A model generated the notes under the pieces. It saw only the letters and a program-made list of their open reading frames with translations. It was not told the DNA's origin and did no database searches. Below, in pieces: positions 1 to 64,000 of a DNA stretch of 64,000 nucleotides. Each line of letters opens with the position of its first letter. Within the stretch, counting starts at the first letter, position 1. The DNA is taken from contig NIVC01000807.1 of NCBI GenBank assembly GCA_002269645.1, positions 124,001-188,000 on the forward strand. The letters are read 5' to 3'. Origin of the DNA: Macrostomum lignano (Eukaryota). The translations under genes and the position numbers were made by a program.

Positions 1-505
1 GATGCCAGTACATCAAGCGGAGATGCCGATTCATTAAGCGGAGGATGCCAGTACATCAAGCGGAGATGCCGATTCATTAAGCGGAGATGCCGATTCATTA
101 AGCGGAGATGCAAATTCATTAAGCGGAGGATGCCAGTACATCAAGCGGAGATGCCGATTCATTAAGCGGAGATGCCGATTCATTAAACGGAGATGCAGAT
201 TCAACAAGCAGAGAAACCGATTCAACAAACAGAGATACCGATTCAACAAGCAGAGAAACCGATTCAACAAACAGAGATACCGATTCAACAAGCAGAGAAA
301 CCGATTCAACAAACAGAGATACCGATTCAACAAACAGAGAAACCGATTCAACAAACAGAGATACCGATTCAACAAACAGAGAAACCGATTCAACAAGCAG
401 AGATACCGATTCAACAAACAGAGATACCGATTCAACAAACAGAGATACCGATTCAACAAACAGAGATACCGATTCAACAAGCAGAGATACGGATTTAATA
501 AGCAG
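1..505. repeat. 21-bp intronic minisatellite (GATGCCGATTCATTAAGCGGA drifting to GATACCGATTCAACAAACAGA)
   Basis: Tandem 21-bp units visible directly; lies in the CCP1 intron 3' of the donor at 554. Confidence 0.95.
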
Positions 506-554
506 AGAAGTCAATTAGCAACCTAAGTTTCTACTAAGAAGTTATCAAGCCAAC

Positions 555-3027
555 CTTCTAGCATCGTCAAGCATCAGCTCCATGGCGCATTCGCTTCGCC
601 GAGTGTCGCAAGGCTCCCGATGCGGCGGCGGACTGACGCTGACCAGCTCCGGGCCAGCCGTGATGGCGAACTCCGCTACCGACCGGACGGCGGCTGCAGC
701 TGGTGCAGGCGCTGCTGAAGTCGTCGCTGGCGATGGCTCCGGCCAGCCGCCGATGCTGCGGCTGCGAGCGAACGGTTGAGCAGCGGCCGGAGCCAGCAGA
801 GCCGACGTGGCCGACACAGACAGACGGCCGCCAATCTCAGTGGCCGACGCTGGCTCTGTCGGCTGTCCGAGGGCCAGCCCGTCCAGACTGGGCAGGCTTG
901 GCGACGGCGTCAGTGGCGCAGTCGACGCCGGACAGCAGGTGCAGCAGTCGGACAGCTCGGGCTCCAAGTGGCCGTAGGCGGCGCGAAGCTCCTCGGCTGA
1001 GCGCGGATCCGCGCCTCCGACAGCCGCATCGTCGGCAAATTCGTCAGACGGCTGCTGTTGCTTCTGAACGTCGGCATCGTCCGAACTGTCGTCCTCGTCG
1101 CTGTTGACAGCGGCAGCAGCAGCCCCGGCGGCGGCGTCTGCTGAATCGTCCGACGCAACTGCGACTGCGGCTGCGGCGGAGCTGGTGGAGCTGACCAGCA
1201 GTTGGAGCAGCGCCGGTGTGTAAGGCGACAGCAGGCTGGGCGCCGGCAGGCATGCGCGGGGCGCGCTCTGACGCAGAATTATACAGGCGCCAGCGTTGAG
1301 GAGCTCGCCAGCTGAGGAGGCCGGGCCGGCCAAGCAGTGGCGGTAGAGGCTGGCCGGCCCGCCGGCCGAATGGAATGCAGCCCGGCCAGCCTTGCTGGCA
1401 GTGACATTGCGCAGGGTGTGGACAATCGCTCGCAACAGATAAGTGCGTTGCTGTTGCTGCCGCTGACGTGCGCTGGCAGAAGCGGCCGCCGTTGTAACCA
1501 CAGAGGCATTCAGCAGCTCCACCAGCGTAGCCGCTGCGCCGCCAGTGATGGCGCGACTGGCATTGGCGCGCGCCCGGGTCAACTGGCTGAGCGCCTCCGC
1601 TGCGCGCCGCGCCGGACCGCCAGGCAGAGGCTGGCGCCGACCCGCGGCAGCTGCTGATGCGCCAGTGCTGGCGCCGCCAACACCGCGATGACTCTCGGAC
1701 AGCAGGCGAAGTAGCAGCTGGACGGCGCCGTGTCGGCCAAGGCTGGTCGAGCTCTGCCGGCTGAGGGCGTAGGCGCGCAACAGCCGCAGGAGGCTCTCGG
1801 CGCCCCGAGTGGACAGTCCGTGGCGCAGGAGGCTCAGTACCACCGGGGCGCACTGGCACAGCCTGGCTTTGGTGGCCAGCCGTTTGTCTTTGGGCGCCAG
1901 CTTGGCGAGAACCTGAGAGTTGAGTAGAGTAGACCAGCTTTTGTATATTTGTACTTATATGTGTTAGTCTATATGTTTGTCTATACAACTATTATACCTG
2001 GCATTTTCTTGATACTTTACTTACATAAAAAAATAGCAGACTATTGCGTGCATAAAATCAATCATAAAGAACTTTTATTTGATGCTCTACTAACAGTAGA
2101 AAGATTGGGGAAATACGACAACAATAAAAACAAAGAAAATTTGTTGAATTACTGCCCCAGGTAAAAATATTATATCTTAATTGGTCACAACATCTGAAGG
2201 CTGCGCCCGGCTGCTCAGTCCAGGGGGGGGCTTGCTCAAGGACACAAATTGTGCCAGTGGGATCGGGAATCGAACACCCGACCTTCAAGTCGTGAGTCCG
2301 ACGCTCTAACCACACCGGTTCGCTGACCGTGAGTCAATTTCAATTAAATATAATCTCAATCGTGGTGTTTAAGCCTGAGGAATCGCTTCTCTATTTGCAA
2401 TGCTCACCAGGTGCAACTGCAGCAGCAGAGCCTCATTGGGCGTAGGGGACCGCCACTCCGATGCAATCGCCTGGCACACAGCCTGAGTGCCGCCCAGTTT
2501 AACAAAGATTCGCGCACGTTGGCCACTCTTTGTCTGACCGAGCAGCTCCAGTATGCAACTGACGGTGGCCAGGTGCACCTCCCGGTCTGACACTGTCTGC
2601 AGGGTGAGTACCAGGCTCTGAGCATAGTTCGCCTTCCGTAGCAGTGAATCTCTGTGAAGTTTTTCTAAAATTTAGCGTCGAAAAGCAATACCTTTTAAAA
2701 AATTGCTCTTCCAAATTTCTACATCATCTGTTGGTCCATAGATTGGGGCATTAAATCACTGAGAGCATTCTAATAGACAGAAAAACAAATGATTATAATT
2801 TAACAAACCTCGAGCTTGCAGTGCCTGTTGCAGCTTGGACACTACTCCACGCACATGAGCAACTTCTTCAGCCTTTGTTTTGAACTGGGATGTTGTTTTG
2901 TGAAACTTGACTAGTGCATCAAAGTGTGTTGTGACTTTACCCCTAATATAGAATAGTTGGAAAAAGTATTTTATTGTTAAGTATTTATTCTAAATAAAAA
3001 GTACAAGGAAAAAACTCACAGGTCCAT
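555..3027 (-). CDS. AGTPBP1: Cytosolic carboxypeptidase 1 (Nna1/CCP1), N-terminal ARM-like half; gene continues off the left edge
   Basis: Phase-consistent exons 3020-3027 (ATG GAC CT; or 3020-3040 as a micro-exon), 2809-2942, 2408-2664, 555-1912, all with GT/AG sites. The spliced protein contains ARIFVKLGGTQ, LHLVLAKLAPKDKRLATKAR, LGRHGAVQLL and LRNVTASKAGRAAF, which match CCP1/AGBL1 N-terminal motifs as I recall them (ILAKIGPKDKKFGVKAR, LGKNGVVELM, VTNIKLGRKAF). The catalytic domain is not in the window. Confidence 0.85.
2165..2330 (-). mobile_element. tRNA-derived SINE with CORE-like segment
   Basis: Minus strand reads GGTCAGCGAACCGGTGTGGTTAGAGCGTCGGACTCACGACTTGAAGGTCGGGTGTTCGATTCCCG (degenerate A box, B box), then GTGTCCTTGAGCAAG, resembling the CORE-SINE motif. 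Confidence 0.7.
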
Positions 3028-5136
3028 GGTGAATAGCTTGCTGTTTTTTTAAATCTTTTGCCTATATTTCAAGCTGCAACTAAAGGTTTTCATGAATTCT
3101 TTTATTTAATGAATTAAACATAGCATTAGAAAAACTTTCAAGGTAAAACTCAAATCAAACTTTTGATTCTAAAAAACAATAGTGCTATATTCAGATTGTA
3201 TGTCTAAAAATTGTAATTTGTTGCAATATTCAACTTTGCCAGCACACTTCTATATATTTAAATCATATACTAACTTTGGATATCATGGGATATTATTAAT
3301 TTAGACTCATTTCTCTTATAATACACTATCTACATTTTATATATAGCAGTATGCATACCGAAATATTACTTTGAATTCCATAAATAAAAAGGCATAAAAT
3401 TGTAATTTAAAATGAGAATATTACTTTTATTTACTTTAATCTCCAGTTTACTCTTGCAATTCGACTTACAAGAAGCAACAGATTATGACCTGTAGGGAAA
3501 TAACCTATGGCCCTATTTTTTGTTTTATGTCCTAGCACATAAAGTACTAGAAAGAATTTTTTCGAAAACTAAGCCAAAATAAAACGTCAAAAATTCATAA
3601 AACCAGCTATCTCTCTCTCAGGGTGAAAAATTCTAAAAGATGCTATTAAATATCATAAAATTTTGATAGTCTATCGGTTAAATTTAAACTAAAACTAACA
3701 AGATGATAAATAAAAATTGAAACCACCACGATAACTAACTCATTAACAGACTTGAGGGTTAACTCCTAACTAACTGTACGCCAACTTCGAAGAAATAGCG
3801 TGCAACCAATCCATCTTGAATCCGACACCAACAACTCAGGCACGCTCATTCAAAAACCATTAAAACAAATGTGATAATGCGGTACATTACCTGAAATTTG
3901 CATTAAGGACTGACAATGTAGAAATACAAAAGCATTTTTGTAGCACTAAAATCAGGCTCTGTATTCCCAACATATTTTGTGCTCCTTCTATTTCTGTATT
4001 TGGAGTTAGTCCACGAATTCGAAAGACGTAATCATAGGGCCTTTTCATATTGCTTGCTCTGGTTCCAGAACCAGAACCAATTTGTGAAGTATAACTTTTT
4101 GTCTCCATAACTAGAGGGAAATACGTGCTATAAAGTTTTTATTATTGAATGACAATCGCCAAGAAGAAAGTGAAAAATTGTGCTAAGTTAAGTTGTTAAG
4201 GCAGTCAAATATTAACAGAGTTTAATAGTTATACTGCTGTTTTTCTTGGAATTCCGAACCGATTCTGGTTCTGGAATTGGTAATATGAAAAGCCCCATAG
4301 TCATATACATGTATGTCTTTCGAATGTCATGTGATATGCATGTAGGATTTTGGAAAGGGTGGGTATAACTCCGATTCGGATTTGATAGTAAATAGATTGA
4401 AGTTTAAAAAATAGATTGCTGTTCAAATTTTGCACTATGGCAGCTATTTTGCTCCGCGGACCCGAACACGCGGTGCGCGCTCTATATGGGGTTGCTCGAT
4501 CATTTGCGACAAACATTACTTCAATTGTCCACTATTGTAACGAATGAAGTAATCTGAGTAAAGTGGCTTAAACATAATGTACCATGGAAATATCTAATAT
4601 TATACAGTGTTTCTTCGAAACCTATACTCCCTTAAAAATTGATTCATCATGATGCACTTGAAAGGCCAAAAACTACATGTACAGGTATACATGTATGTTT
4701 CTGTAAATACGATTATGTTGAAAGTAAATATATTAGTAAGTATAGCTTGCATGTACATTCACGTTTGGGATATGTGAATTGTGAATCTATACGTGCGAAG
4801 GCACATCCATGGCTATCATGATGTTATATCATGTGTTTCAAAAGTTCATGCTTTCTTATAGAAAAAAATCTAATTCAGTTTTACATGTAAAAAGTTAATA
4901 ACACCTATACATGTATTGGATAGGACTTATAATTCTTTCTTCCGGTCTATATAAATGTATTTAATTATTTGCTTAAACACTTTCAATCCGCTTCACCAAG
5001 ACAGCTATAGCGATAGGATTTCGCGAATAAACAAGTCGAGAAAACTCGAGTAAAATGTAGGTGCAAGATTTTCTAGGTTCCAATTATAAAAGTGCAGCAA
5101 CTGTCCAATAAGAATTACTACTACCCAGCGGACCAA

Positions 5137-5493
5137 TCAATCAGAGGTTCTCAAGAAGAAGCAGACGGCACAGCAGCAGCCGTCAGCATTGAGGCCGCAG
5201 GCTTCGTAGCACTGCATGGCAGTGGATCGGCAACGAAACACGCAGACACGGTACAGACCTCGCTTGGCCCGCGACATCTGGTGATGGTGCAGATGCGCCT
5301 CCGTAGCGTTGGCAACAATTCGCCGCATCAGGCGCGGGTTGGCCAGCACCTTGGCCGTCTCCTCGTCCTCGAGTTCCAGCGGCAGCACCGTCCGGGTGGC
5401 GGTGGGACCGTCGGAGAGCTGCTGCTGCTGGCTAACGCCGATCAGGCAGGCGGCAGCAGCGCCCAGAAGGAAGAGCAGGCAGAGAGACTTCAT
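5137..5493 (-). CDS. Secreted cysteine-rich prepropeptide (signal peptide, acidic pro-region, RAKR site, 40-aa 8-Cys mature peptide)
   Basis: 118-aa intronless ORF, GC-rich within AT-rich flanks; hydrophobic N-terminus MKSLCLLFLLGAAAACLIG; furin-type RAKR; C-terminal GLYRVCVFRCRSTAMQCYEACGLNADGCCCAVCFFLRTSD. Confidence 0.85.
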   Translation of the reverse strand: MKSLCLLFLLGAAAACLIGVSQQQQLSDGPTATRTVLPLELEDEETAKVLANPRLMRRIVANATEAHLHHHQMSRAKRGLYRVCVFRCRSTAMQCYEACGLNADGCCCAVCFFLRTSD

Positions 5494-6647
5494 GTCAGGT
5501 TTGAGAGCTCAAATTAAGCTTTTCAAGTATAGTTAAATAGAGAAAGAATTAAATCTTCGGATGAAGATTCTTGGAAAAGCTGCAACATGCTTCAAATATA
5601 TAGACAAATTGAGCATGCATGCGGATGTCAACACTTATAGCGGTTTGGATCGTGAAATAATAACAGGCCAAATATGGAAATCGGAAACAAAGTTAATTTA
5701 CACCATGTACACGCGTGCCAGATGTTGTCAGCTTGTTCAAGAATTGAATAAACAAACTTTGTTGTTGATCCGCCATAAAGCCTTCATGGGCGACCAAAAT
5801 TAACAGTCAAGACTGTCAATAATATAGTATCAAAATAGCGCGACTCATATAGTTGTTAAAGGAGATTCTACTTGGAATTATGTAGTATAAATACTTTACA
5901 CACTCGCATGCACGGGCTTAAATTTCTTATTGCGTTGAATATGAATCAATTCTACACGTGGAACACGGATTTTCAAATATTAGAAAATTACAATAAATGG
6001 CTAATTGCAACTCAAGAATTCCAAAATCGTCTTCCTAATAATAGGTACAAAAGCTATTAATAAATGCATCGAAAACATTTTACTCCCGAATGTGATGACT
6101 CTAAAAGACAGAGTCGAACATCCAGTATTCTCTTGATGAACAATTCATACATGCTTAACAATCTCTTTTTGAGAATACTGTTTTGTACTAGCTTTCTCGG
6201 AGGGTACAAACAAAAAAACCTTTTTGTCTTAATTCGTTATTGCTCGTAAATTACTTTTATTCGTATAGTAAAATTCATGGAAGTCGTTACGTTTTGTTAC
6301 GTTTTTTTCCGCAACGTCCGCGAGGGTCTGCGGAGTCGCCGTGGGTGGCCATTCGTTCTATGACGGCAGTGCCTGCAGTCCTAGAGGCCCTTCATTTACC
6401 ACAATGCCGCTAATTTAAAGCACCCTCGCTTTGCTGGGTTGCTAAGGAAGGCGCCACATTCACGTCCACATCCCGATGATTTCCTTGACCTTACGAGTAT
6501 TTTCTCAACCGTTGAAGGCGCTCAGCAACTCAGTAAATAAGCTAGTCGAGAAATACATGTTTATAAGTACGTACGAGTACATGCAAATAGATAGTTGCGT
6601 GTAAATATATGTACAGGTAGTAAGCACATTTGACTGCCAGCAAGTTC

Positions 6648-6703
<56 letters not shown>

Positions 6704-6831
6704 TGATAAATAGATAGATAGATAGATAGATTGATTGATTGATAGATAGATAGATAGATTGATAAATAGATAGATAGATTGATAGATTAATAGATAGACA
6801 GATAGATAGATAGACAGATAGATAGATAGAT

Positions 6832-6878
<47 letters not shown>

Positions 6879-6966
6879 TGATAAATAGATAGATAGATTG
6901 ATAGATTAATAGATAGACAGATAGATAGATAGACAGATAGATAGATAGACAGATAGATAGATAGAT

Positions 6967-7025
<59 letters not shown>

Positions 7026-7057
7026 GATAGATAGATAGATAGATAGATAGATAAATG

Positions 7058-7134
<77 letters not shown>

Positions 7135-7139
7135 CAGAC

Positions 7140-7198
<59 letters not shown>

Positions 7199-7203
7199 CA
7201 GAC

Positions 7204-7275
<72 letters not shown>

Positions 7276-7375
7276 TGATTGATTGATAGATAGATAGATA
7301 GATTGATAAATAGATAGATAGATTGATAGATTAATAGATAGACAGATAGATAGATAGACAGATAGATAGATAGAT

Positions 7376-7422
<47 letters not shown>

Positions 7423-7550
7423 TGATAAATAGATAGATAGATAGATAGATTGATTGATTGATAGATAGATAGATAGATTGATAAATAGATAGATAGATTG
7501 ATAGATTAATAGATAGACAGATAGATAGATAGACAGATAGATAGATAGAT

Positions 7551-7597
<47 letters not shown>

Positions 7598-7685
7598 TGA
7601 TAAATAGATAGATAGATTGATAGATTAATAGATAGACAGATAGATAGATAGACAGATAGATAGATAGACAGATAGATAGATAGAT

Positions 7686-7744
<59 letters not shown>

Positions 7745-7776
7745 GATAGATAGATAGATAGATAGATAGATAAATG

Positions 7777-7857
<81 letters not shown>

Positions 7858-7862
7858 CAGAC

Positions 7863-7921
<59 letters not shown>

Positions 7922-7926
7922 CAGAC

Positions 7927-8005
<79 letters not shown>

Positions 8006-8066
8006 CAGATAGATAGATAGACAGATAGATAGATAGATAAATAGATAAATAGATAGATAGATAATC
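6648..8066. repeat. (GATA)n microsatellite with internal 719-bp duplication
   Basis: GATA/GACA/GATT array; variant landmarks recur at exactly +719 (6787/7506, 6906/7625, 7051/7770). Confidence 0.97.
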
Positions 8067-8679
8067 CATATACTAAAATTAAATTTTAAATCTTTAGTAC
8101 CATAAGCCAAAACTGGTTAATCAATACGACACTGTAAAAGTCATAAGCATTTATTGCCCAGGTAATTCTAAAAAATGGTTCAATTAATTTAGACCGAAAG
8201 TTAAGCTCGGACAGGATTGTTCTGCTTTGAATAATTTGGACGCAAGAAAAAATATTTGCCAGTTTGCCAGTAATGTATTTCACAAATCCAATACGATTCA
8301 AGTCTGCACAAATACAACTACAACTACTAGAGATAAATATTGGTAAGTAGTGTGGCATGCAAATTCTCTACATATTTATGATAAGAAAAACGGATTTACA
8401 CAGCGGATTACACAGAGCAGATGTAGAAGTCTTTAATTTACTCCTAGTCCTTAAGAATCAGTTTTTTTGGCTCTGTTGAAGAAAAAAAATTAGGGGTCAT
8501 TTCAAGTCGACTCTAATTAGAAATGATCACAACAGTGAAAACAAGAGCAAAATAACCTACTCAATGAAAATTCACCTACTCATTTTAGTAGCCAAATAAG
8601 CATTTTTCTGTAATTTTTAATTAAAAAGACCAGAAAGCGACACTGGCCACAAATTTCCTGCTCATTACTTTGGAAACGT

Positions 8680-10798
8680 CTAATCCCCCCGTTTCTGCCG
8701 GACCACAGCAGCCAGATAATACTCGCCAGCTTTGTAAGACGATCGAACCAGGGGACCGGAGGCCACGTACAGAAATCCCATAGCTTTGCCGCGCTCTTCC
8801 CAGCTTTTGAATGCCTCGGGTGTGACGTAATCTCGCACCTTCAGGTGCCGCTTAGTTGGCTGAACGTACTGGCCCAGGGTGAGCGCCTCAACGCCCACGC
8901 TGCGCAGGTCCTCCATCGCCTTGAGAATCTCATCGTCTGTCTCTCCGAGCCCGAGCATCAGGCTGCTCTTGGTCACCACGTCCGGTCGGCAACGTTTCGC
9001 GTGGCTCAGCGCGTCCAACGATTGGCGATAAGTGGCTTTGGGATCGCGGACAAGGCGCTGCAGCGATTCAACTGTCTCCAGGTTGTGGGCCAGCACCTGG
9101 GAGTGTGTTGAGTGAATATCAGAGCAATAGTATACCCTACCATATGCAACTGTTTGCTTTTCAAGAGGGGGTGATGCAAGCAGCCTATTCTGCTGTGTAC
9201 TAACCGCGCAAAACGCTGCTTAACTTCTTACTGAAACAAACCAGTAGCCCCATTTAGTTAAAAAAATAACGTTAAATCTTCCACACTATAACTATAACTA
9301 AATTTGAATCGGTGGGACTACTTTTACTACTTATAGTAGCCTATGACAGATAGTGAGAAAAAAATTGCAAGACGGCTTGTGGGCACCCTGGCGCAATACC
9401 TTTCTGCGACATCGCCCAGCAACCAGCGCATAGACGGCAATTCTGCAAATTCCGCTGACTCCTGAGCACATGCAAGCCGCGCCAATACTGTACACAGGCA
9501 CGCACTCACACAGGGTGTACACCGGCTCTGACTTTGAAATCGTCAGGCAAGTACATTTTCTGTGCCTTTGGGGGTTGGCCTTTGTGAATCACACGACAAC
9601 CTCCAAGTGAATTTTCGTGCTCTATCTTAACTTTGCCTACTATTATGTAATAGGCGAGGTGATGAAGAACACAGCTAATAGGAGGCGAAGTAGCCTAGCA
9701 AATAAGCGGCAAACTCGTCCGAATCTCGTGCCAGGAGCCTTGGATCGATATGGGGCTACCCTTTGCCCCAGTGAGCAGTGTCTTCCGACCAGCGTCCATC
9801 ACCTGGCCGAGTCGCAAAAATGCCCACCAAAAACAGACTGAGTACTAATTAGATGACGAGGCATTTAGCGTTAATAAAACATTAAATTATAGTTACTCCT
9901 GCCGTTTACCCAAAATTGCGTTAATTTTGAGGATATTTTTTACAGGTAAGTCGCACGGCCCAGTGCAAATCAGGGGGTTGCGCATGTATGAATCCATCAA
10001 ATCTCCGCCCTCCGCTCTTCCCTATCCCTCCTCAACCAGCCCAACTCTGCAAGGTGCGTCACACAAAAGTCAATACGTATACGTGCTCAGGTGCCAGCGT
10101 TATTAATGGGAATTAATAATAATCTATTAATAAATTAATGAATGATTCACCTGCGGTCCGCTTAAAACCACCGTCTCCATGCAGTCTGGCCGGCCGCGGA
10201 AATCCGGCACCAGGCATTCGACTAGCATGTCTGGCCTTAGGCGCAGAATCTCGGACACGGTGGCGCCAATGTGTCCGGCGCCGCCGTCAGCTAAGTCGTC
10301 CCGATCAACGGAGGTCAGCACAACGTAGTGACCGGACCAGCCGGCCACAGCCTTGGCGGTGTTGGCAGGCTCCATCGGATCCAGCGGCGGCGGCTTTAGG
10401 CTGGTCTTGACCGAGCAGAACCGACAGGCCCTGGTGCAAGTGTCGCCCATCAGCATGATGGTGGCCGTGGCCGCCTCGCCGCTCCAGCATTCGCCAATAT
10501 TCGGACAGCGGGCCTCCTCGCACACTGTATGCAGCTTCAACTGACGGAGGCTGCGTTGCATCTTGGCGAACTGTCCGCCAGCCGGGATCTCCCGCTTAAG
10601 CCAGTCTGGCAGTCGTAGCCGCGCCGGAGGCCGCTGCGCATTGGGCAGGAAATCCTCCAGGCCCGGCCCGCCGGCCACGCGGTTCTTCTGCGCCTGGCTG
10701 AGGCTGCACAGACTGGCGCGGCGGCTGCGCAGGATGATTGTTGCTGGGCAGCGGATCGCGTCCACTGCTAGAATGCGTTGCTGATTGACTAGAGCCAT
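8680..10798 (-). CDS. LIAS: Lipoyl synthase, mitochondrial (radical SAM)
   Basis: Exons 10151-10798 (ATG GCT CTA) and 8680-9096, phase-0 GT-AG intron; motifs [12 protein letters not shown] (CX4CX5C), CTRACRFC (CX3CX2C), [28 protein letters not shown]; Arg-rich presequence-like N-terminus. Confidence 0.97.
9370..9615 (-). mobile_element. 5'-truncated copy of SINE family A (see 54149-54510) in the LIAS intron
   Basis: Shares body and 3' end (ATTGCGCCAGGGTGCCCACAAGCC) with the full copy. Confidence 0.8.
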
Positions 10799-13397
10799 AA
10801 GGGATAGAGTACACAATTGAAATGCTTACACAGTCAGGAGTCAGCTGTTTTCCCATATCTGTATACAATGCCTATATATCTGGATTATATAAAATTGTAG
10901 TGTTTTTCTCAATGTTTTAAATTTATTTTTTAGTGTTAGGCCTAAGAACTTTTTCAAATATTGATACTTTTTAACTTAATCCATAGTTGTAGCTTACTGA
11001 CTTTAATTTATTTCTATTGTTCTAAACCCTTTCCATGCATTAAATCAAGGGCTTCAATGATCTTTAAAGTATTTTTAAGTCTTAGTTTTGTGTCATCAAT
11101 ATTAATAGATATAGGAGCTTGGTATGGGAAATATGCATTCATATAACCATATCATATATCCATGTACATTTTATCTAATCTATCTTAAACTGCCTATAAT
11201 TTTCTATAGTCATATATATAGCTATGACAGATTTTTTCAATATCTTATAAACTATTACAAGGCTATTAGCCTTTAGACCAGCTATATTGACATAAAAGAA
11301 ATTAAATCAATAAATAACAAGACTGATAATTGCAAGAATAAATATATCTAACAAGAAAATATTTTTAAAGAATATAATTTTTGGTCAATCCAGCCATTGT
11401 AAATTACAGTAGACCAGGGGACCAAGGATGACAAGGCATTTAACCATAAAGACTATTATAGTTACTTTTGCCATTTACCCAAAATTGCAATAATTTTACT
11501 TTAGGGTTTCCTTCATAGGTAAGTCACATTTTCTTGGGCATATAAAATTAAAATTTGGGCATGTATTGGCCTTGCATGCCAAAAGTAGACAGGCACAATT
11601 GGTATGCATCATTCCTAAGAAAATAGTGTGCATGCATACCTGGCATATACTTCATAGAATCACATGGAAGAGTTATTGTAAAATAGAAAAAAAGATAAAA
11701 AGGTTCATTTTCTAAGTGTAAATTTCAAGTTTTCTAGGTTTTTAAAGCTTGTAATAAAGCATTTAAACAAATCTTTGCATATATCGTTTTTTGCATTATG
11801 AAAAGTAACATTATCAATGATTTTCTCATTGACATTAGGAAATTGACATTGATTACATGACTACAATTAACATTGAAAAAGTATAGAAATTAACCAAATG
11901 ATTTGCCAAAAAAGGTCAATTACACAATTCAAAAAGGTCATTTATTGTCACAACAAAAAGGTCCATTATTGTTGCAACATTGTCTTAGTTTTGAAAATGG
12001 GCATGCACTCAATTTTTTGTGTGCATTTATATTTTTATGAAATTTTTTGAATTTTTTTATTGAAAGTTTGGGTAGGTGTACACCCAGCATGATCTGAACT
12101 ATGATATTATATGCCTAAAAATAATATCCAAAAAACTTTCAATCTTAAAAAATAAATATTGTATTATATAAAACTAGGCTTAAAATAAATTAAAATATGT
12201 AGCCTAGGCTAAGTAGATAAGCTTAATTTGCTAAATAATAGCTTATATTTTCATACTATTATTTAAATACTACCATAGCCATAGGCATAGGCCCTAGCTA
12301 AGTACTGCACTAGATGCCCCCTTATTTGAACTTAACATGCTAGGCCTAGCCATCTAGACTACACTTGCACCACTAAGACCTAAGGGCCAATGCCAATATA
12401 TACCAGTACCAGATGCTTCCCATGATAATAGCCATTAGCATTGGTTGCAATAGGGGCCTAGTGGGCATAGGTATTATATAGATGTTTATATTAATGACAT
12501 TTTAATTATATAAAAGATAAAATAGTATTAAAGGCCCAGCAATGTTAAAGATCCTAGCCTAGTCACAAATCATAATGCCATCCCAGTGGTTAGAAAAATT
12601 GGGGCGTACCCTCTAGGCCGGCGCCCCGGCGGCCCTCAAGGGTACGCCCCATCCCGCAAGATAAAAGTTTGTAGGTTTTCTTCTTTGTACGTATGAAATA
12701 TTTTTGTGAGGAAATTATGTAAAGAGCAGAATTTTTAAAGTTGATTTTTTTAGTTTCGGGTGTTTTTGTGCTCGAACCTGACAGTACGCCTTTCAGTACG
12801 TGCAGTGGACAGTGGGGCGAACTATTGATATCCTTATTAATTATTTTCTTGTATAATGAGCTCATTATTTATTTGCATTGACCAATCCTCATACTACAGC
12901 TAACTTGAACTTTTAACCCTTTGAGCAGCCATCTCTTTGAAAAATTGCTGCAAGCTCCAAAGTGGGGTATAGGCGACTCGTGCAAATTTTTCTGAGTTTC
13001 ATACACTTCAGAAATTGGATGTGAACGCAAAAGTGTGCGTTTTAGCCTACCTACTTATAAGTAATACCTTTTGATCTTCGAAATCAACGCAACAAAAAAT
13101 ATATTTTTTAATACTCCACTACTTAAGCACTAGCGCATGTACAATGTTGCTTGTATTCTTAAGTTTTCATTTAGATGAGTCCGATTTGGTGGTCAATTCA
13201 GGATTTTTAAAGTAGTGGGGGCAGATTTGCCCAAATTTTTGTTTTGGTCTAAAAAGCCAAAGTAAGCTCAAAATTTACCCCCCTTATATGCAAGTCCAGC
13301 CATGGCAAAGGGGGCGGCCGCCGGGTCTACTACATCTACGAGTACATTTGACCGCCACAATTTGATCGCCGTTCTATTCAAGGTGAAATAGGGCGGC

Positions 13398-13825
13398 GGG
13401 CAAATTGTCTGGCGGGCAAATTGTCTGGCGGGCAAATTGTCTGGCGGGCAAATTGTCTGGCGGGCAAATTGTCTGGCGGGCAAATTGTCTGGCGGGCAAA
13501 TTGTCTGGCGGGCAAATTGTCTGGCGGGCAAATTGTCTGGCGGGCAAATTGTCTGGCGGGCAAATTGTCTGGCGGGCAAATTGTCTGGCGGGCAAATTGT
13601 CTGGCGGGCAAATTGTCTGGCGGGCAAATTGTCTGGCGGGCAAATTGTCTGGCGGGCAAATTGTCTGGCGGGCAAATTGTCTGGCGGGCAAATTGTCTGG
13701 CGGGCAAATTTTCTGGCGGGCAAATTGTCTGGCGGGCAAATTGTCTGGCGGGCAAATTGTCTGGCGGGCAAATTGTCTGGCGGGCAAATTGTCTGGCGGG
13801 CAAATTGTCTGGCGGGCAAATTGTG
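13398..13825. repeat. 16-bp minisatellite (GGGCAAATTGTCTGGC) x~27
   Basis: Near-perfect tandem units, inside the CMC element's non-coding arm. Confidence 0.97.
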
Positions 13826-14371: not shown

Positions 14372-14708
14372 CTAACAGTTCAAGTAATTCTGGAGAGCAC
14401 AGAGTGCTGTCTAGAGAAGCTGTTCAGGCTTGGCACAACGCGCCCGCCAAAATTTTGTTAATGTCAACTTTTGCTCATTGTAATGATCGAAATTCCTTGC
14501 GAGGGATTGGCTAACTATTTTACTTTAAGTGCCAGATAGAGAATCTAGCTCAAGACTGCGGGCCAGAAGGAGGAGAGTGGAGGGGAGAGGGGAGAGATGT
14601 GAGATGTGAGAGGAGGGAAGAGAGGAGAGAGGCGAGATGAGAGAAAGAAGGGAGATAAAGGGAGAGAGGAGAGAGGCGAAAGGAGAGATGTCAGAGGAAG
14701 GGAGCAAG

Positions 14709-14895
14709 CAGTAGGGCAACCAGAAATTTTTTGAGGGGGGGGGCGGATTCTGGAAGGTAAAGTCCCGTGAGGGAGGGGGCGGAGGGGAGGCTCTGTTTTT
14801 GGCGAAAATTCGCTTGGTCCCCCCTTCAATTTTTTCTGGGTCTCCGCCTAAGGGGGGGGGACCGCCCCCCCCCGCCCCCCCTGGTTGCGCCACTG
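14709..14895. mobile_element. hAT-type MITE with 8-bp TSD
   Basis: TIRs CAGTAGGGCAACCAG / CTGGTTGCGCCACTG; GGAGCAAG duplicated at 14701-14708 and 14896-14903. Confidence 0.85.
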
Positions 14896-14984
14896 GGAGC
14901 AAGGAAAGAGGGGAAAGGAGGAGAGAGGGGAGATTTTGATGAGAAAAGGAGAAGAAATTAGCAAAAAAGCTGAGAAGAGATGCA

Positions 14985-15097
14985 AACCTTGAGCGGGCTG
15001 GATTGTTATTGGCATGGGAAGTTAGAAAGGACCCGAGGGCTGGATAGAGAGACTGCGGGCCGCATGTGGCCCGTGGGCTGGAGTTTGCTGACCCCTG
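14985..15097. mobile_element. hAT (Charlie/Tip100-like) terminus fragment
   Basis: GCGGGCCGCATGTGGCCCGTGGGCTGGAGTTTGCTGACCCCTG is typical of hAT subterminal GGCCCG motifs plus a CAGGGGTC TIR; the partner end was not found. Confidence 0.6.
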
Positions 15098-16820
15098 CAG
15101 CCTGCAGTAGGCTATGCATGACGGGCCCAGTTAACTGCATAATGGCAAATAAGAGACATGGGAGATTGGAGATAGGAGACTGTCTCCCCTGTCTCCCCTT
15201 CATTTATCTCCCCGATTACGAGTAGGGCACAGTCACTCAGTCACATTTTGATAAGGAGGGATACATAGACATAGATATTTTCTCAGTTTTCATATTCAGA
15301 GGCGGTCAGAGCTCAAATGGGACAGGTCATGAATAAATAACAATCTAACCCCCGCCTTGTCATTTTTCCGGATGAATAAATCCACTGAATCATAAAGGTT
15401 TCAAAGTGCCTTTGCGTTCTCATGACAGTTTTTGCCACTCAATATTCTAGTCTTACTGAATCCCCGAGTTAACAGAAAATTATAGCTCGGCGCACGTCCG
15501 CCAGCTTGAATATTCTCGCTATATTGTTCTCTATTTGCGATCGTCTTTTACAACCCGACATCAATAAAACCCGTGTGGGCTTTATCTCTCATTAACAGAA
15601 ATCTCTCATCAATTATAGCCTGTATAAAGCTTACTCATTTTGAGTTGCTCTTAGAAAAATGTTTTGAATTTCCTGGCCAGTGGCAATAACCCGTAATGAC
15701 AGGGCAATGCAAGGAATTATTTTAACCTAGAGGTGACAGCTAATTTTGGCCAATTCATTTCAGTTGGGTGGGGGGGTTAGAAGAAAGGCTAGAGAAGTGA
15801 TATGGGAATTTCTACGTTGTACCGTTCTTGCCTGCTTAAGCGAACCTATGCGAAACAAACAAACTGTCCTGACTCCTTATCAGTGCAGGTCATCAAGTTT
15901 TTTCTATTCCCATATTGCACCAAAGATAAAGGAAGAACAAAGACGAATTTCGTGCGAGGCTTGACAAGGTCTGAACTATATATATATTAGCTGTACCTAT
16001 ATATATTAGCTGTACCTAATTCTATTATAATATATATATATATTTTATAAGTTACAACCTAGCATAAACACATAAATACTTTGATACGGAAAGTATTGAT
16101 TCGATCTGACCTAAAATAGGTGCCAGCAAAAGAAAGAAAATATTCATAGCATTTTATATGTGCTTAAAAGTAAAACCAGATGGTAACAGATGGAAATTAC
16201 AGTTGTGCAGCTAGTTGATTATTATCAATGGGATAAGTAAAATATTACAAAAATTCTGTTGGCTTGAATTGGAGGTAGGAATACTGTATACAATACCATT
16301 AGTATTTCATACTCGTATACTGGGGTTTAAGAAAATAAATCCCCCATTTCAGCCACATACAGCGGCATCACCTCCCACTAAGTTTCCGGCCCCTCCACCC
16401 CTCCTACACAGTTTTGAGCTAAATTACCCCTCCGGCCTCTATAACACCGAATTTTAAGCTGTACCTAATTCTAGGGTTCAAGAATGTAAACAATAAAGAT
16501 AGAATCAATATAATCAGTCTCTAAAATAACTCCAGTTCATGAATGACCGATCGCCAGGCTTGTAGTAAACTCGTGAAACTGCGGATCCTAAAAGTAAAGA
16601 TAAAATGGCAGTTGCGATCGAGTATGCATCGTAATATACTAATATTTAACTCACAATCTACAATCATGTCTGCGTGTTGAAGCTGAGAACATATACAGGA
16701 AGAAATTGCAGAATTGCAGAATACAGGGAATACGAGAATCGAGATAGAAGGAAATCGGATTGATATAAAAAACCAGAGAAAGATATTTTTAGTACTCACT
16801 TGCGACTCACGCGTCCTACA

Positions 16821-18848
16821 TCAGGCCTCCTCGGAGTCACCTGTCAGAGGAATGACAAAAAAATGGCTTGCTGGATCCCTGTCCGCTCCAGCAAGATTGG
16901 CAAGCAGATTCGCAGGCAAAATCCAGCACTTTCGCTCAGGTGTGCCAGTTAGAACACCAGATGTCATCCTGTACAAGCCGATTCCCAGACGCAAAGATGG
17001 ATATGGGTTGGCGTAGATGTTGTCAACTGGGTGTAAAATCCTGCCAGTGACTTGATTAGCTTCACTTACAGCTTCGATTAGGACGCATACTTTGTCGATT
17101 ATGCAACAATTATCACCTCGCTTTGTGCTGAATTTCAACGGTGGAATTCGCTGCTCATTCAACAGAAGATCGCGAACTCTGAGCACCTGCTTAACTGAAT
17201 GCGCTGCCATGTGCCTTGTCACCTTTACGCGGCGCTTTACAGATCCAAGAAAGTTTTCGAAAGGGAAAGTCGAAAAGTTGTTTAAACTGCCTAGCTTTCG
17301 GACAAACTCATCCAAATGAAGAATAGTGTGAAGATTGAAACTTATAAACTTCTGGCCGTAAAGGTGGGCAGCCCGTTCAACAAAAACTTCAATGCAAGTT
17401 TTTGCCTGCGTCCACCACTTGGAGTACCTTTCGTTGGAGTATGCGTAAATGGCGAAATGGAGGTAAAGAAAGTGGTTATACCTTTCTTCATTTAAAATGC
17501 CTTTGAAGAGGACAGGTCCTAGGTACAGCAAGTACTGTCTGAATTCAGTAGCCTTCATGTGCTTCAGTTCCAAGTCGATTTTCCGGGGTCTTCGTTGAAA
17601 GTTTGAAGGTGTCCAACCGGCAGCCATAGTAATTCGGTCGCCCAATAGGCTCATCGGACCGGGATAGACGAGACACTTCTTGCCATTAGATTTGTCGAAA
17701 AATAGGTAAAATAGCTTCCTTGTGACTCCAAGGCATACGGCATGCTGGTAGTCAGGGGGAAAAGCATCGACAAAACTAATGTTAGGCAAATTTAGAAGGG
17801 GCGATAGAGCGATTTTTTTATTTTCCTGGTTAGACTCCTTTCCCTCTCGGTATTGTTGGCTGCTACGAGACTCCCCGACGCTCGTTGAAAATGTTACTCT
17901 GTTGTCGGTATAAGGTCCAGTAGCCCTGCAGTACATGCAACCGACGTACGACATGTGCCCTTGAGTTACTGAGACCCAGGCTCGAGCAGGCGCATCGCAA
18001 ACAAATCGGATAGTCGAGAAGCTGATGCTTAAATTTTCGATAATTTTTATTGGACCCGTAAGAAAACGTTTAGCCTCGTCGCAAAATTGTCGAAGATAAT
18101 CATTCAGAGGTGGCTTGCCACAACCAGCCCATACGGCTACTGGAAAAGGTCTGCTGAATATGCTGGGAATAGACATAAGTATGGGCCAAAGACCGAAGTG
18201 GCTTGCTCGGTACAAAGGCAAGCCGTCAAAATTAACGATGGCTTCAATTTTGTAAACCTTCTCAGTTTCACTATCGTGTTGTAGATATTCTGGCTTCATG
18301 TGCAGCTGGTTTTTGCGAAACATTAGTTCTAGATTTTTCAGAATCGAAATGTAGCGAAAATGGCCTTTTCCCATGGGCTCCAATTTTTCCGTTGGATCGC
18401 CAGCATTGATGACGGCCTCAATAGAGTTGACAGACTTCGGCGCAGGCAAGCCTATGTCTCTTAGACCATCAACAAGGAATTTTTTAGATCCACGACTTAG
18501 GTTGAAACAAGAAAAGTAGACTACCAGCAAGGCGAATATTTTATCTTCTAAAGAGCGGTCATCCTCTTTCTTGTCAATCTCCTCATCTTCATCGCTGCAA
18601 ACTCGCGCGAACTCGTCAAAATCAGGATAGCTGCCATTGTCGTTGTCAAGATCTGGATCCGTACCTTCATTGACTTCTGCTACAGAGGACTCCGAAGCGA
18701 TGAAACCGGCGACTCTCCCAGAATCATCTGCTTCGAATACTTTTCTTTTTTTCTCTTGCAGTGCGATGTCTTCCAAAGCTTCTTGTTCTCCTTCCATGAA
18801 CAAGCCCAGCAAATCCTTATTTGCTTGTCGCCTCAATTGCCTTGTCAT
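16821..18848 (-). CDS. CMC/EnSpm-type DDE transposase (675 aa, uninterrupted)
   Basis: Motifs NFDGLP, WPIL, FVCDAPARA, GHxxYxGCxYC, DYQHAVCLGV, FQRRPR, KATEFRQYLLY and FPFENFLG, characteristic of animal EnSpm-like transposases. Confidence 0.9.
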   Translation of the reverse strand: MTRQLRRQANKDLLGLFMEGEQEALEDIALQEKKRKVFEADDSGRVAGFIASESSVAEVNEGTDPDLDNDNGSYPDFDEFARVCSDEDEEIDKKEDDRSLEDKIFALLVVYFSCFNLSRGSKKFLVDGLRDIGLPAPKSVNSIEAVINAGDPTEKLEPMGKGHFRYISILKNLELMFRKNQLHMKPEYLQHDSETEKVYKIEAIVNFDGLPLYRASHFGLWPILMSIPSIFSRPFPVAVWAGCGKPPLNDYLRQFCDEAKRFLTGPIKIIENLSISFSTIRFVCDAPARAWVSVTQGHMSYVGCMYCRATGPYTDNRVTFSTSVGESRSSQQYREGKESNQENKKIALSPLLNLPNISFVDAFPPDYQHAVCLGVTRKLFYLFFDKSNGKKCLVYPGPMSLLGDRITMAAGWTPSNFQRRPRKIDLELKHMKATEFRQYLLYLGPVLFKGILNEERYNHFLYLHFAIYAYSNERYSKWWTQAKTCIEVFVERAAHLYGQKFISFNLHTILHLDEFVRKLGSLNNFSTFPFENFLGSVKRRVKVTRHMAAHSVKQVLRVRDLLLNEQRIPPLKFSTKRGDNCCIIDKVCVLIEAVSEANQVTGRILHPVDNIYANPYPSLRLGIGLYRMTSGVLTGTPERKCWILPANLLANLAGADRDPASHFFVIPLTGDSEEA

Positions 18849-19212: not shown

Positions 19213-22200
19213 ATGAAGTTTTTAGTGATCTTTAAAGACGACCGTCAAATTGTTGAGGTCTCGGAAAGCGAAGTGAAGCTTCCTGAAGGCTTTCAAAACC
19301 TTAAGGAAGAGGAATGGTTAGAAAAGAGGGACTCCACTGAGAAGTGGAAGTGTGAAGCCTTGTATGAAGGCTGTTTTTACTCTGCTCTAATTATTCAGGT
19401 AAGCAACCGATCCCAACGATTGAAATGTTAAAATTCTTGAATCGATCTAATATTTGTACGCTCATATTTTCTCATTAATTTAAAGGTAATACTAAGCAAC
19501 AACCTAGAGCCTGGGAGCTTCCGCTTTGTGCGTGAATTGGTGGCCAAAAAGACCCGACTGAACCGAATTCTCGAGTTGGTTCAACCCAGAGTCTTTCAGG
19601 AGCGTGACATGAAGAAAGCACGAAGGCATTACCAGACTAAGGTAAAATTAAGCACAGCCCATATAATTTTTATCGAGAACTTTGTTTTCTCCGTTTTACC
19701 TTTTAAACTATTTTTTAAGAAAAGGGAAGAAATTAAATGTGAAAATAATCTTTAAAACTGACATTAACTTGATAATTTCTCATGCCGTAACCATCCCAAA
19801 CAGAATCTGTCAGACGGCTCAGCCACCGATTCCGAGGCAATCTTCGAAGATAAGAGCAGCCGCTGTTTGCAACCTCCAGCTTTGCTGCCTAAACAACATC
19901 CGCCTACGATTGCACAGTTAGCGCCAATGCCTCCTATTAGTGATGATGAAGCAGAAGCTGGCGTAGACGCCGATATGGAAGCTGAGGCGGAAGCTGAGGC
20001 GGAAGCTGAAGTGGAAGCTGAGGCGGAAGCTGAAGTGGAAGCTGAGGCGGAAGCTGAAGCGGAAGATGAGGTGGAAGCTGAGATCGGAGCTGAGGTGGAA
20101 GCTGAGATGGGAGCTGAGGCGGAAGCTGAGGCGGAAGCTGAGGTGGAAGCTGAGATGGGAGCTGAGGTGGAAGCTGAGGCGGAAGCTGAAATAGAAGCTG
20201 AGTTCGTAGCAGATGATCGATCGACGATTCCTAAGTCGCCTCCCACCATTTCATCTTTTAATTTTGGTTCTGGCTTTCTTAGAAAACTAGAAGAGCAGAT
20301 CCAAGCCGGTGTTAGCTTTGAGCTGGAAAGTCCAAGAGGCATCAAGTTTCTGTCCTTATATGCCCTACGCGAACTTACTATGCGCAAGAATGAATTGAAA
20401 GCATTAGAAAATAGTTTGACCAAACAAATCACCGCAATGCGCACTGAAGTGCAGAGCGTGCTACGCTTTTTGGAACCTGTTGGCGCTGACATTCCAACTG
20501 ATAATTCTGAGCCTTCATTCTGGCCGATCAACTCCTGGGAAAAATATGTGCAATTCGCTTCCAGTCCAAATGAACATATTTCTACTTTGGTAAGTTCATG
20601 ACAGAGTTTTTTATTTTCTTTTCATTAGAAGAAATGTCTAACTACTACTCAAAGCGCACTAGTACTATCACTGAAATAATAATCTATAAGTATTCTCACC
20701 TGTAAAAATCTAAACAGAAGAGCCTGCTACGTTCATGCAAGCGAGACAAGTGGTCCGATGCTTTAATGGCAATGCTTAACGAGAGCTTGTCGAAAGAGAT
20801 GCAGGCGGTTATTAATTTAATCGGGTCAGACATGCGAAGCCGAGCTGTTGCTGCTGGAGTTGCGACCAACCTTACTGATGCGCAGCTTGGATTTCAGAGC
20901 ACTCTGCTCAGCCATTTCCAAAGTAAGTCTACTTAATCAACGTTCAATGAGACTTTTAGAGCTAAATATCAAGAAATTAGTCGAGCACAGTGCATGCTAT
21001 TCATAGTAACTTTCAACTTTTTTCCTAACAGAAGCAATCACATTCATCTATGGCGCGACCGCTGAAGCCGGCAGGCCCTCTGAACAATCTGTAAGAAATA
21101 CTTGCAGACAGCAGCTAAAGCATGGCGGTGACCGATTAAAGGGGCGGTCGCATCGCACAGGAAGCCAGCTGCTTTCCGGAGTCCAGACTCAAAGCCCCGC
21201 TTCTGACAGCGCCGTACAAAGACAGTCTCTGGTGACAGCGACTCCAAGCCCCGCTTCTGGCAGCGCCGTACAAAGACAGTCTCTGGTGGCAGCGACTCAA
21301 AGTCCCGCTTCTGGCAGCGCCGTACAAAGACAGTCTCTGGTGGCAGCGACTCCAAGCCCCGCTTCTGGCAGCGCCGTACAAAGACAGTCTCTGGTGGCAG
21401 CGACTCCAAGCCCCGCTTCTGGCAGCGCCGTACAAAGACAGTCTCTGGTGGCAGCGACTCCAAGCCCCGCTTCTGGCAGCGCCGTACAAAGACAGTCTCT
21501 GGTGGCAGCGACTCAAAGTCCCGCTTCTGGCAGCGCCGTACAAAGACAGTCTCTGGTGGCAGCGACTCCAAGCCCCGCTTCTGGCAGCGCCGTACAAAGA
21601 CAGTCTCTGGTGGCAGCGACTCCAAGCCCCGCTTCTGGCAGCGCCGTACAAAGACAGTCTCTGGTGGCAGCGACTCCAAGCCCCGCTTCTGGCAGCGCCG
21701 TGCAAAGACGGTCTTTGGTGGCAGCGACTCAAAGTCCCGCTTCTGGCAGCGCTGTGCAAAGACGATCTCTGGTGGCAGCGACTCAAAGTCCCGCTTCTGG
21801 CAGCGCCGTGCAAAGACGGTCTTTGGTGGCAGCGACTCAAAGTCCCGCTTCTGGCAGCGCCGTGCAAAGACACAGCCATTCATCTTCTTTTTCCCTAGTG
21901 AGTAAAAACGTATCTAAACTGAATAATGAACGATGAATACTATGATTGCTAAGCATTAAATACTACTATCAGTAAGATAAAATGTGCATGCAGTAATTTT
22001 TTGTTTTCTTTCCAATGTCACAGACACCATCGCGACTATCAGCGGGAGAAGTGCCGCCAGCGGCGACAGCAAAGCCGAGCTCCCAATCCAGAAAGCGAGC
22101 GAGTATTCAGTTGGATTCTCAGCCTCGAAAGCGGAACAACCATCGCCCCCGTTCAGCAAAGTCAAAAACCAACTACCGCACTGACTGCTCTCTCGAATCT

Positions 22201-27801: not shown

Positions 27802-53503
<25,702 letters not shown>

Positions 53504-56653: not shown

Positions 56654-56758
56654 TGTTATGGTGTTATGGTGTTATGGTGTTATGGTGTTATGGTGTTATG
56701 GTGTTATGGTGTTATGGTGTTATGGTGTTATGGTGTTATGGTGTTATGGTGTTATGGT
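56654..56758. repeat. (TGTTATGG)x13 microsatellite at the Gypsy truncation point
   Basis: Direct observation. Confidence 0.95.
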
Positions 56759-63484: not shown

Positions 63485-64000
63485 CAATGGGAATTGCTCA
63501 GATGGCCGATGACTCAAGAGAGGAATTGCTCAGATGGCCGATGACTCAAGAGAGGAATTGCTCAGATGGCCGATGACTCAAGAGAGGAATTGCTCAGATG
63601 GCCGATGACTCAAGAGAGGAATTGCTCAGATGGCCGATGACTCAGGAGGGAATTGCTCAGATGGCCGATGACTCAGGAGAGGAATTGCTCAGATGGCCGA
63701 TGAATCAGGAGGGGAATTGCTCAGATGGCCGATGACTCAAGAGAGGAATTGCTCAGATGGCCGATGAATCAGGAGGGGAATTGCTCAGATGACCTATGAC
63801 TCAAGAGGGGAATTGCTCAGATGGCTGATGACTCAAGAGGGGAATTGCTCAGATAACTTGATGACTCAGGAAGGGAATTGCTCAGATGACCTATGACTCA
63901 AGAGGGGAATTGCTCAGATGACCTATGGCTCAAGAGGGGAATTGCTCAAATGGCCAATGACTCAAAAGGGGAATTACTCAGATGACCAATGACTGAAGAA
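63485..64000. repeat. 32-bp minisatellite (GAGGAATTGCTCAGATGGCCGATGACTCAAGA), runs off the window
   Basis: Tandem units visible. Confidence 0.95.

Follow-up and report, generated by a model that had tools for sequence, protein, structure and literature searches.

The question raised by this locus is whether a short minus-strand open reading frame in the window (the whole stretch of 64,000 nucleotides of Macrostomum lignano DNA analysed here) encodes a genuine secreted peptide and, if so, of which kind and for which role. An earlier note, made from the sequence alone, had described a signal peptide, an HLHHH tract, a RAKR motif and a 40-aa cysteine-rich peptide on the minus strand of 5137-5493; all four were found where it had placed them (Table 1). 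The frame is uninterrupted over 118 codons, from 5493 to 5137, and reads MKSLCLLFLLGAAAACLIGVS / QQQQLSDGPTATRTVLPLELEDEETAKVLANPRLMRRIVANATEAHLHHHQMSRAKR / GLYRVCVFRCRSTAMQCYEACGLNADGCCCAVCFFLRTSD. We consider it very probable that the gene product is a secreted, processed prepropeptide.

Table 1. Features of the peptide gene, its neighbours and the satellite arrays (window coordinates).
Feature	Position	Strand	Details
Complete single-exon CDS of the prepropeptide	5137..5493	minus	118 aa + stop
Predicted signal peptide	5431..5493	minus	residues 1-21, MKSLCLLFLLGAAAACLIGVS; hydropathy and SignalP 4.1 on the twin copy
Pro-region	5260..5430	minus	residues 22-78, QQQQLSDGPTATRTVLPLELEDEETAKVLANPRLMRRIVANATEAHLHHHQMSRAKR; net charge +1
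LELEDEE cluster	5359-5379	minus	sole acidic part of the pro-region
RR dibasic pair	5320-5325	minus	in the pro-region
N-A-T sequon (N-glycosylation)	5302-5310	minus	in the pro-region
HLHHH tract	5281-5295	minus	in the pro-region
RAKR, R-X-K/R-R furin / proprotein-convertase motif	5260..5271	minus	residues 75-78
Predicted mature peptide	5140..5259	minus	GLYRVCVFRCRSTAMQCYEACGLNADGCCCAVCFFLRTSD, 40 aa, 8 Cys
Candidate TATA box	5594..5602	minus	TATATATTT; 101-109 nt 5' of the ATG
Candidate poly(A) signal ATTAAA	4960..4965	minus	~175 nt past the stop codon
Lipoyl synthase (LIAS) exons	10127-10816, 8680-9096		upstream of the peptide gene
CCP1-type M14 carboxypeptidase exons	2369-2593, 545-1843		downstream of the peptide gene
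Satellite arrays	13395-13824, 21186-21872, 28370-29816, 37000-37631, 38501-39071		
Satellite arrays, continued	39565-40596, 41184-41840, 42111-43606, 44084-44613, 63489-63999		

The precursor and its second genomic copy

The hydrophobic core of the signal peptide spans residues 5-20 (Kyte-Doolittle 2.0-2.6), and cleavage would occur at about residues 19-21. The pro-region that follows had been called acidic, a description that did not hold: with a net charge of +1 and a pI of 8.6, it is acidic in the LELEDEE cluster only. Four histidines raise its charge to about +4.5 at pH 5.5, and the HLHHH tract sits seven residues upstream of the predicted cut. The RAKR motif predicts convertase cleavage after R78. 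The mature peptide would then carry its cysteines in the spacing C-X3-C-X6-C-X3-C-X6-CCC-X2-C, exactly the framework read by the earlier note. Its charge is +0.7 at pH 7, hydrophobic or cysteine residues make up 60% of it (cysteine itself 20%), and its mass is 4437 Da reduced or about 4429 Da with four disulfides.

The window protein has a twin, the hypothetical protein BOX15_Mlig027746g1 (118 aa, 98% identical), located on contig NIVC01002410.1 of assembly GCA_002269645.1. Aligned to the window, this contig is collinear and shows 91-97% nucleotide identity, and in both copies the genes follow one another in the same order and on the same strand: lipoyl synthase, then the peptide gene, then a CCP1-type M14 carboxypeptidase. 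The M. lignano genome is neopolyploid (PMC5730564, PMC10733133), and the divergence between the two copies would fit homeologous or haplotypic copies. No paralogue was detected within the window by tblastn. The candidate TATA box TATATATTT is identical in the second copy and is a plausible promoter element, whereas ATTAAA is split there by a 2-nt insertion, so that we call it a poly(A) signal only tentatively.

Comparing the two copies, we found seven differing positions over the 357-nt CDS: five synonymous and two non-synonymous, the latter both conservative (L41V in the pro-region, S117T in the tail). The corresponding pN/pS is 0.13 (Fisher p = 0.012), a value that stands on seven substitutions only. 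Read in the overlapping antisense ORF (5092-5517, plus strand), the differences amount to zero synonymous and seven non-synonymous changes; the constrained frame is therefore that of the minus strand. The CDS is free of indels between the copies, whereas both 400-bp flanks contain some. Moreover, the CDS has a GC content of 0.63 and a GC3 of 0.76, against a GC3 of 0.63-0.73 for neighbouring exons and a GC content of 0.33-0.35 for the 500-bp flanks.

These data bear on a sceptical reading of the locus, namely a transcribed but inert young ORF or an annotation by-product, whose cysteine pattern has no role. Such an ORF could well have homologues amounting to two near-identical copies in one neopolyploid genome, and the flanks are themselves 96-98% identical between the copies, which makes conservation of the CDS alone a weak argument. 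The 5:2 synonymous bias, the absence of CDS indels between indel-bearing flanks and the 0:7 antisense pattern all speak against inertness, as does a GC3 like that of bona fide exons. The architecture is also singular: among the window's 94 ATG-initiated ORFs of 60 aa or more, this one alone has a signal-like N-terminus together with an internal R-X-K/R-R and a tail rich in cysteine, and no other ORF of the window unites a signal peptide with an optimal furin motif and an even cysteine count. An inert ORF is thus very unlikely in our view. Given the twin copy, the synonymous bias and the GC content of the CDS relative to its flanks, we conclude that the locus is, as far as the comparison of two copies can tell, a genuine single-exon M. 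lignano gene under purifying selection.

Transcription is implied by the gene model of the twin. The Mlig_3_7 models were made from RNA-seq alone, with StringTie/TACO and the TBONE boundary pipeline (PMC5730564), and therefore the existence of a model for the twin implies that the locus is transcribed. A full-text literature search for the twin's identifier, Mlig027746, found nothing, and the identifier did not appear in the supplements, possibly incomplete, of PMC5816591, PMC12896417, PMC12732829, PMC7336406 and PMC5946080.

Homology searches and a previous listing as AMP-like

In a word-indexed search of 5.8 billion proteins, the precursor matched only its twin copy, and the mature 40-mer yielded no candidates. 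An exhaustive phmmer search of 1.84 billion cluster representatives recovered the twin and one further protein, P0002 (608 aa, E 3e-5), which we rejected as a homologue: it is an ORF read across a 177-bp DNA unit that recurs in tandem (9.8 copies) on a metagenome contig, and its score was inflated nine-fold because CREKCGSKQVGCSCRAMC recurs along it. At its source (794-2541 of ERZ25071726:ctg208644_4x_l), translation of the DNA repeat mimics a Cys-rich peptide repeat; P0002 shows that satellite repeats can generate false Cys-peptide homologues.

Known families were equally silent. Pfam hmmscan at E<=10 gave only a spurious glycosyltransferase match (E = 0.09), with no profile match to hepcidin, macin, knottin, ShK, insulin or other Cys-rich Pfam families at that threshold, and PDB sequences returned nothing for the precursor or for the mature peptide. 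The planarian toxin preprint contained nothing relevant to the peptide. We also searched with the cysteine framework alone, using 40 sequences in which the eight cysteines were kept and all other positions randomised. As a profile against the PDB, the framework found only the TACI CRD2 (E 0.09, four of the eight cysteines). Against Pfam, none of the 40 sequences matched any Cys-rich family, a result that is weakly to moderately informative because in a control built on the plant-defensin framework two of ten sequences recovered defensin-type families (a sensitivity of about 20%). No listed conotoxin framework is known to have the order C-C-C-C-CCC-C. Readings of the protein as a metallothionein or as a palmitoylated cysteine-string protein were rejected on account of the signal peptide, the even cysteine count, the aromatic residues and a cysteine content of 20%.

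How far does the word orphan reach? When the searches were calibrated with the neighbouring LIAS exon, the best match was 66% identical and M. lignano LIAS itself was unlisted; the collections therefore show no sign of containing Macrostomum congeners. Orphan here means that the peptide has no relative in annotated proteomes, including those of about 30 other flatworms, with congeners outside this scope. As a predicted convertase product, secreted and rich in disulfides, the molecule is of a familiar kind; its cysteine framework appears unmatched among known families, in agreement with the negative Pfam, PDB-sequence, Foldseek (see below) and exhaustive HMMER results and with what the earlier note had supposed. 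The new family that it had also envisaged is not borne out: the searches point to a single species with two almost identical copies, which do not amount to a demonstrated family.

Nor was the peptide entirely unrecognised. It belongs to no known family, as had been claimed, but its twin is already listed in a 2023 PLoS Pathogens screen for helminth antimicrobial peptides (AMPs), where BOX15_Mlig027746g1 appears in S5 File as fAMP-LP 521 (PMC10414684). The entry records SignalP 4.1 = Y, one ProP 1.0 site and the predicted peptide GLYRVCVFRCRSTAMQCYEACGLNADGCCCAVCFFLRTTD, 40 aa long and starting GLYRV, with a prediction score of 90.9%, that is 10 of 11 AMP predictors positive (PMC10414684). The N-terminus of the twin is identical to that of the window protein, and these published results carry over because residues 41 and 117 are the sole differences between the two proteins. 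The SignalP and ProP checks suggested for the window protein are thereby answered in the positive, by runs on a 98% identical twin that delimit the same 40-mer.

The screen's pipeline left fAMP-LP 521 'Ungrouped' and dropped it, for want of a 'sequelog' and because peptides rich in cysteine were left aside; being Cys-rich, it was never synthesised or tested there (PMC10414684). The 'Ungrouped' label is little informative, because peptides were grouped from a BLASTP score of 100 bits upwards, a mark that this 40-mer misses even when aligned with itself (94 bits). The predictor consensus must be read with the bias of AMP predictors toward Cys-rich peptides, which the screen concedes (PMC10414684). 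The fAMP-LPs are a computational category and not a homology family (PMC10414684). All together, the peptide is already catalogued as "antimicrobial-peptide-like".

Predicted fold and likeness to known peptides

The AlphaFold model of the mature 40-mer (single-sequence, pLDDT 75.3) has strands at residues 2-6 and 33-37 and a short helix at 14-16. The model of the whole precursor has a pLDDT of 45 and is unusable as such; in mature numbering, this poor model shows a strand at 2-10, a helix at 15-20 and a strand at 28-37. In both models the first CxxxC motif falls on a beta-strand and the short helix holds the second alone, and the strand extents of both fit an antiparallel register of i + j = 39. 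Intrinsic propensities agree with this layout: YRVCVFRC and CAVCFFL favour strands, TAMQCYEAC favours a helix and GLNADG a loop. A Foldseek search of the mature model against the PDB gave no match at E<=10, small peptides being hard for Foldseek.

If the register is right, C6 would lie opposite C33 and C10 opposite C29, while Y3, V5, V7, V32, F34 and L36 would share the other face of the sheet with C28 and C30. The helix bearing C17-X3-C21 could then pack on the face of C28 and C30. From this geometry we infer the disulfide pairing C6-C33, C10-C29, C17-C28 and C21-C30, which would combine a staple between a CXXXC helix and a CXC strand, of the kind seen in CS-alpha/beta defensins, with a two-rung ladder across the strands. 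The result would be a very compact four-disulfide mini-protein of strand-helix-strand layout.

This strand-helix-strand prediction departs from what had been expected of the two CxxxC motifs, namely that they staple two antiparallel helices into a hairpin; structure prediction, one of the checks that had been proposed, did not return a hairpin. A hairpin to which the CCC-X2-C tail is a mere appendage does have a basis in the sequence, since CX3C-Xn-CX3C is the defining motif of alpha-hairpinins and Cs-alpha/alpha toxins of the kappa-hefutoxin type and the peptide contains it as C6-X3-C10-X6-C17-X3-C21. Those peptides, however, have four cysteines and two helices, whereas the flatworm peptide has eight cysteines and a six-residue linker, and its first motif is beta-prone and modelled, with moderate confidence, as a strand. 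Moreover, a hairpin would force the four cysteines of the tail into vicinal or CXC ring pairs, which would be strained. The spacing C-X3-C-X6-C-X3-C also occurs in the helix-loop-helix part of TACI, but that match (E 0.09) is not significant and covers four of the eight cysteines. We therefore regard the helical hairpin as improbable. As to a relationship with the TACI/BCMA TNF-receptor domains, these are domains of membrane receptors that share the identical sub-spacing, and we rejected it as a coincidence of spacing, there being no significant whole-domain match and no Pfam match.

Returning to the strand-helix-strand layout, the closest resemblance is to the defensins. The sequence signature of CXXXC plus CXC is present (C6-VFR-C10, C17-YEA-C21, C28-C-C30), as a pattern that is no proof of fold. 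The mussel defensin MGD-1 (PDB 1FJN) is likewise about 40 aa long, with eight cysteines in four disulfides, a CXXXC motif and a CXC-X2-C tail; its spacing is C-X5-C-X3-C-X6-C-X3-C-X7-C-X-C-X2-C. BLASTP aligned the CX3C-X6-CX3C-G blocks of the two peptides in register, with a pairwise E of 0.065 that is not significant. The flatworm peptide differs by its CCC triplet and by lacking the N-terminal cysteine of MGD-1. Compared with CS-alpha/beta defensins in general, its predicted helix-to-strand staple is of the same type, but AlphaFold places the helix on the second CXXXC and not on the first, predicts two strands and not three, and the GXC element is missing; defensins are also cationic, whereas this peptide is near-neutral. 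With no defensin match among Pfam families or PDB sequences, the resemblance is a lead and not a membership.

Hepcidin, a vertebrate beta-hairpin hormone, and other furin-processed host-defence peptides with eight cysteines come from precursors laid out like this one, in which a signal peptide and a pro-piece (about 35-57 aa across the precursors compared) precede an R-X-K/R-R site and the short eight-cysteine peptide forms the C-terminus. Their cysteine framework is another one, and the flatworm peptide does not match the Pfam Hepcidin profile. It is tempting to see in the peptide a new fold for a disulfide-rich mini-protein, in which four disulfides crowd into 28 residues of strand-helix-strand layout around the CCC, restricted to macrostomids and either a stand-in for the CS-alpha/beta defensins, reportedly missing from flatworms, or an extremely reduced, cryptic relative of them; we think this unlikely, if somewhat less so than the hairpin.

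Possible roles and genomic neighbourhood

According to the mechanism that we favour, the predicted signal peptide (SignalP, published for the twin) would direct the precursor into the ER, where the peptide would fold oxidatively. A furin-type convertase would then cut after RAKR, as ProP and the motif predict, and release the C-terminal 40-mer, which would act outside the cell as a compact, protease-resistant molecule; in it, the C17-X3-C21 helix would be stapled to C28-X-C30 of the last strand, and two rungs, C6-C33 and C10-C29, would tie the first strand to that last one. Speculatively, the HLHHH tract next to the cut may act as a pH switch for folding or cleavage late in the secretory pathway.

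What would such a molecule do? Our leading guess, held with less than even confidence, is a secreted, antimicrobial-like effector of host defence. It ranks first because of the AMP-predictor consensus, the defensin-like staple, a phylum without classical AMPs and a microbe-rich habitat. It remains a guess because the peptide, at +0.7, is close to neutral, because its pro-region, with no net negative charge, is not the anionic counter-piece that most defensin-type precursors have, and because of the known bias of AMP predictors. The account as a whole, a processed four-disulfide secreted peptide that is most likely an extracellular host-defence effector, seems to us about evenly poised between right and wrong.

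The same near-neutral, hydrophobic character would suit a ligand better than a cationic, membrane-active AMP, and this brings in a second reading, a signalling peptide acting like a hormone, neuropeptide or pheromone on a receptor or ion channel. The order of signal peptide, pro-region, dibasic site and C-terminal peptide, the second (RR) site and the N-glycosylation sequon are compatible with it, as is the presence of one highly constrained copy per subgenome in place of an expanded, fast-evolving gene cluster. The peptide resembles no known peptide-hormone family, however, and lacks an amidation signal, and RAKR is not a PC1/2 site alone: as an optimal furin motif, it is characteristic of the constitutive pathway. 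We rate a signalling role as possible but rather doubtful, behind host defence.

Purifying selection also weighs on a third reading, that of a gland product peculiar to this lineage which serves reproduction, adhesion or structure; the glands concerned could be the prostate (seminal fluid) or the adhesive, pharyngeal, rhabdite or shell glands. Macrostomum glands express many taxon-restricted secreted proteins (PMC5977470, PMC6410801), and gland genes are often orphans, as this peptide is. A pN/pS of 0.13 is unlike the rapid evolution typical of reproductive proteins, though, and the sequence has neither repeats nor an adhesive-type composition; moreover, Mlig027746 is absent from the reproduction-gene supplements of PMC7336406, which may be incomplete. 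A gland secretion appears improbable to us, more so than a signalling peptide.

Should host defence be the role, the peptide would bear on how free-living flatworms of microbe-rich sediment defend themselves, since classical invertebrate antimicrobial peptide families are reported missing from flatworms (PMC10414684). Constrained, with a predicted convertase site, probably four disulfides and an unmatched framework, the peptide offers a concrete candidate within reach of synthesis, and M. lignano is a flatworm with working RNAi and transgenesis, in which function is directly testable. If its fold proved new, a compact scaffold would be added to the disulfide-rich peptide repertoire; if the peptide proved inactive or private to the species, it would be one more orphan secreted ORF. 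Its significance is modest for now, a single species with two almost identical copies standing behind it.

In both copies, LIAS, the peptide gene and CCP1 share one strand over about 12 kb (1-12600 of the window). M. lignano has polycistronic, trans-spliced transcription units (PMC5730564), and co-transcription of the three genes is conceivable. Most of the gap between LIAS and the peptide gene is filled by an (AGAT)n microsatellite of 1.4 kb (about 356 copies, 6648-8063), whose length differs in the second genomic copy. Beside or within the CCP1-like gene lies a 21/42/63-bp tandem repeat with ORFs in several phases (11-508), which is much longer in the second copy (14667-15751 of its contig).

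Elsewhere, mini- and microsatellite arrays are very dense in the window, with periods of 4-54 bp and lengths of up to 1.5 kb each. They show a strong strand skew between 36 and 44 kb, and several create long spurious ORFs, such as the Cys-rich 'VCLS' repeats at 38.5-39.1 kb. An uninterrupted 675-aa ORF on the minus strand (16821-18848), with no Pfam match at E<=0.001, may be a lineage-specific gene or the ORF of a mobile element. LTR-retrotransposon ORFs occupy 56744-58995 on the minus strand: first gag (Retrotrans_gag/DUF7041), then aspartyl protease and reverse transcriptase. Finally, two exons on the plus strand (50592-51464 and 52253-53149) encode a class C GPCR, its NCD3G nine-cysteine and 7tm_3 domains being split across both.
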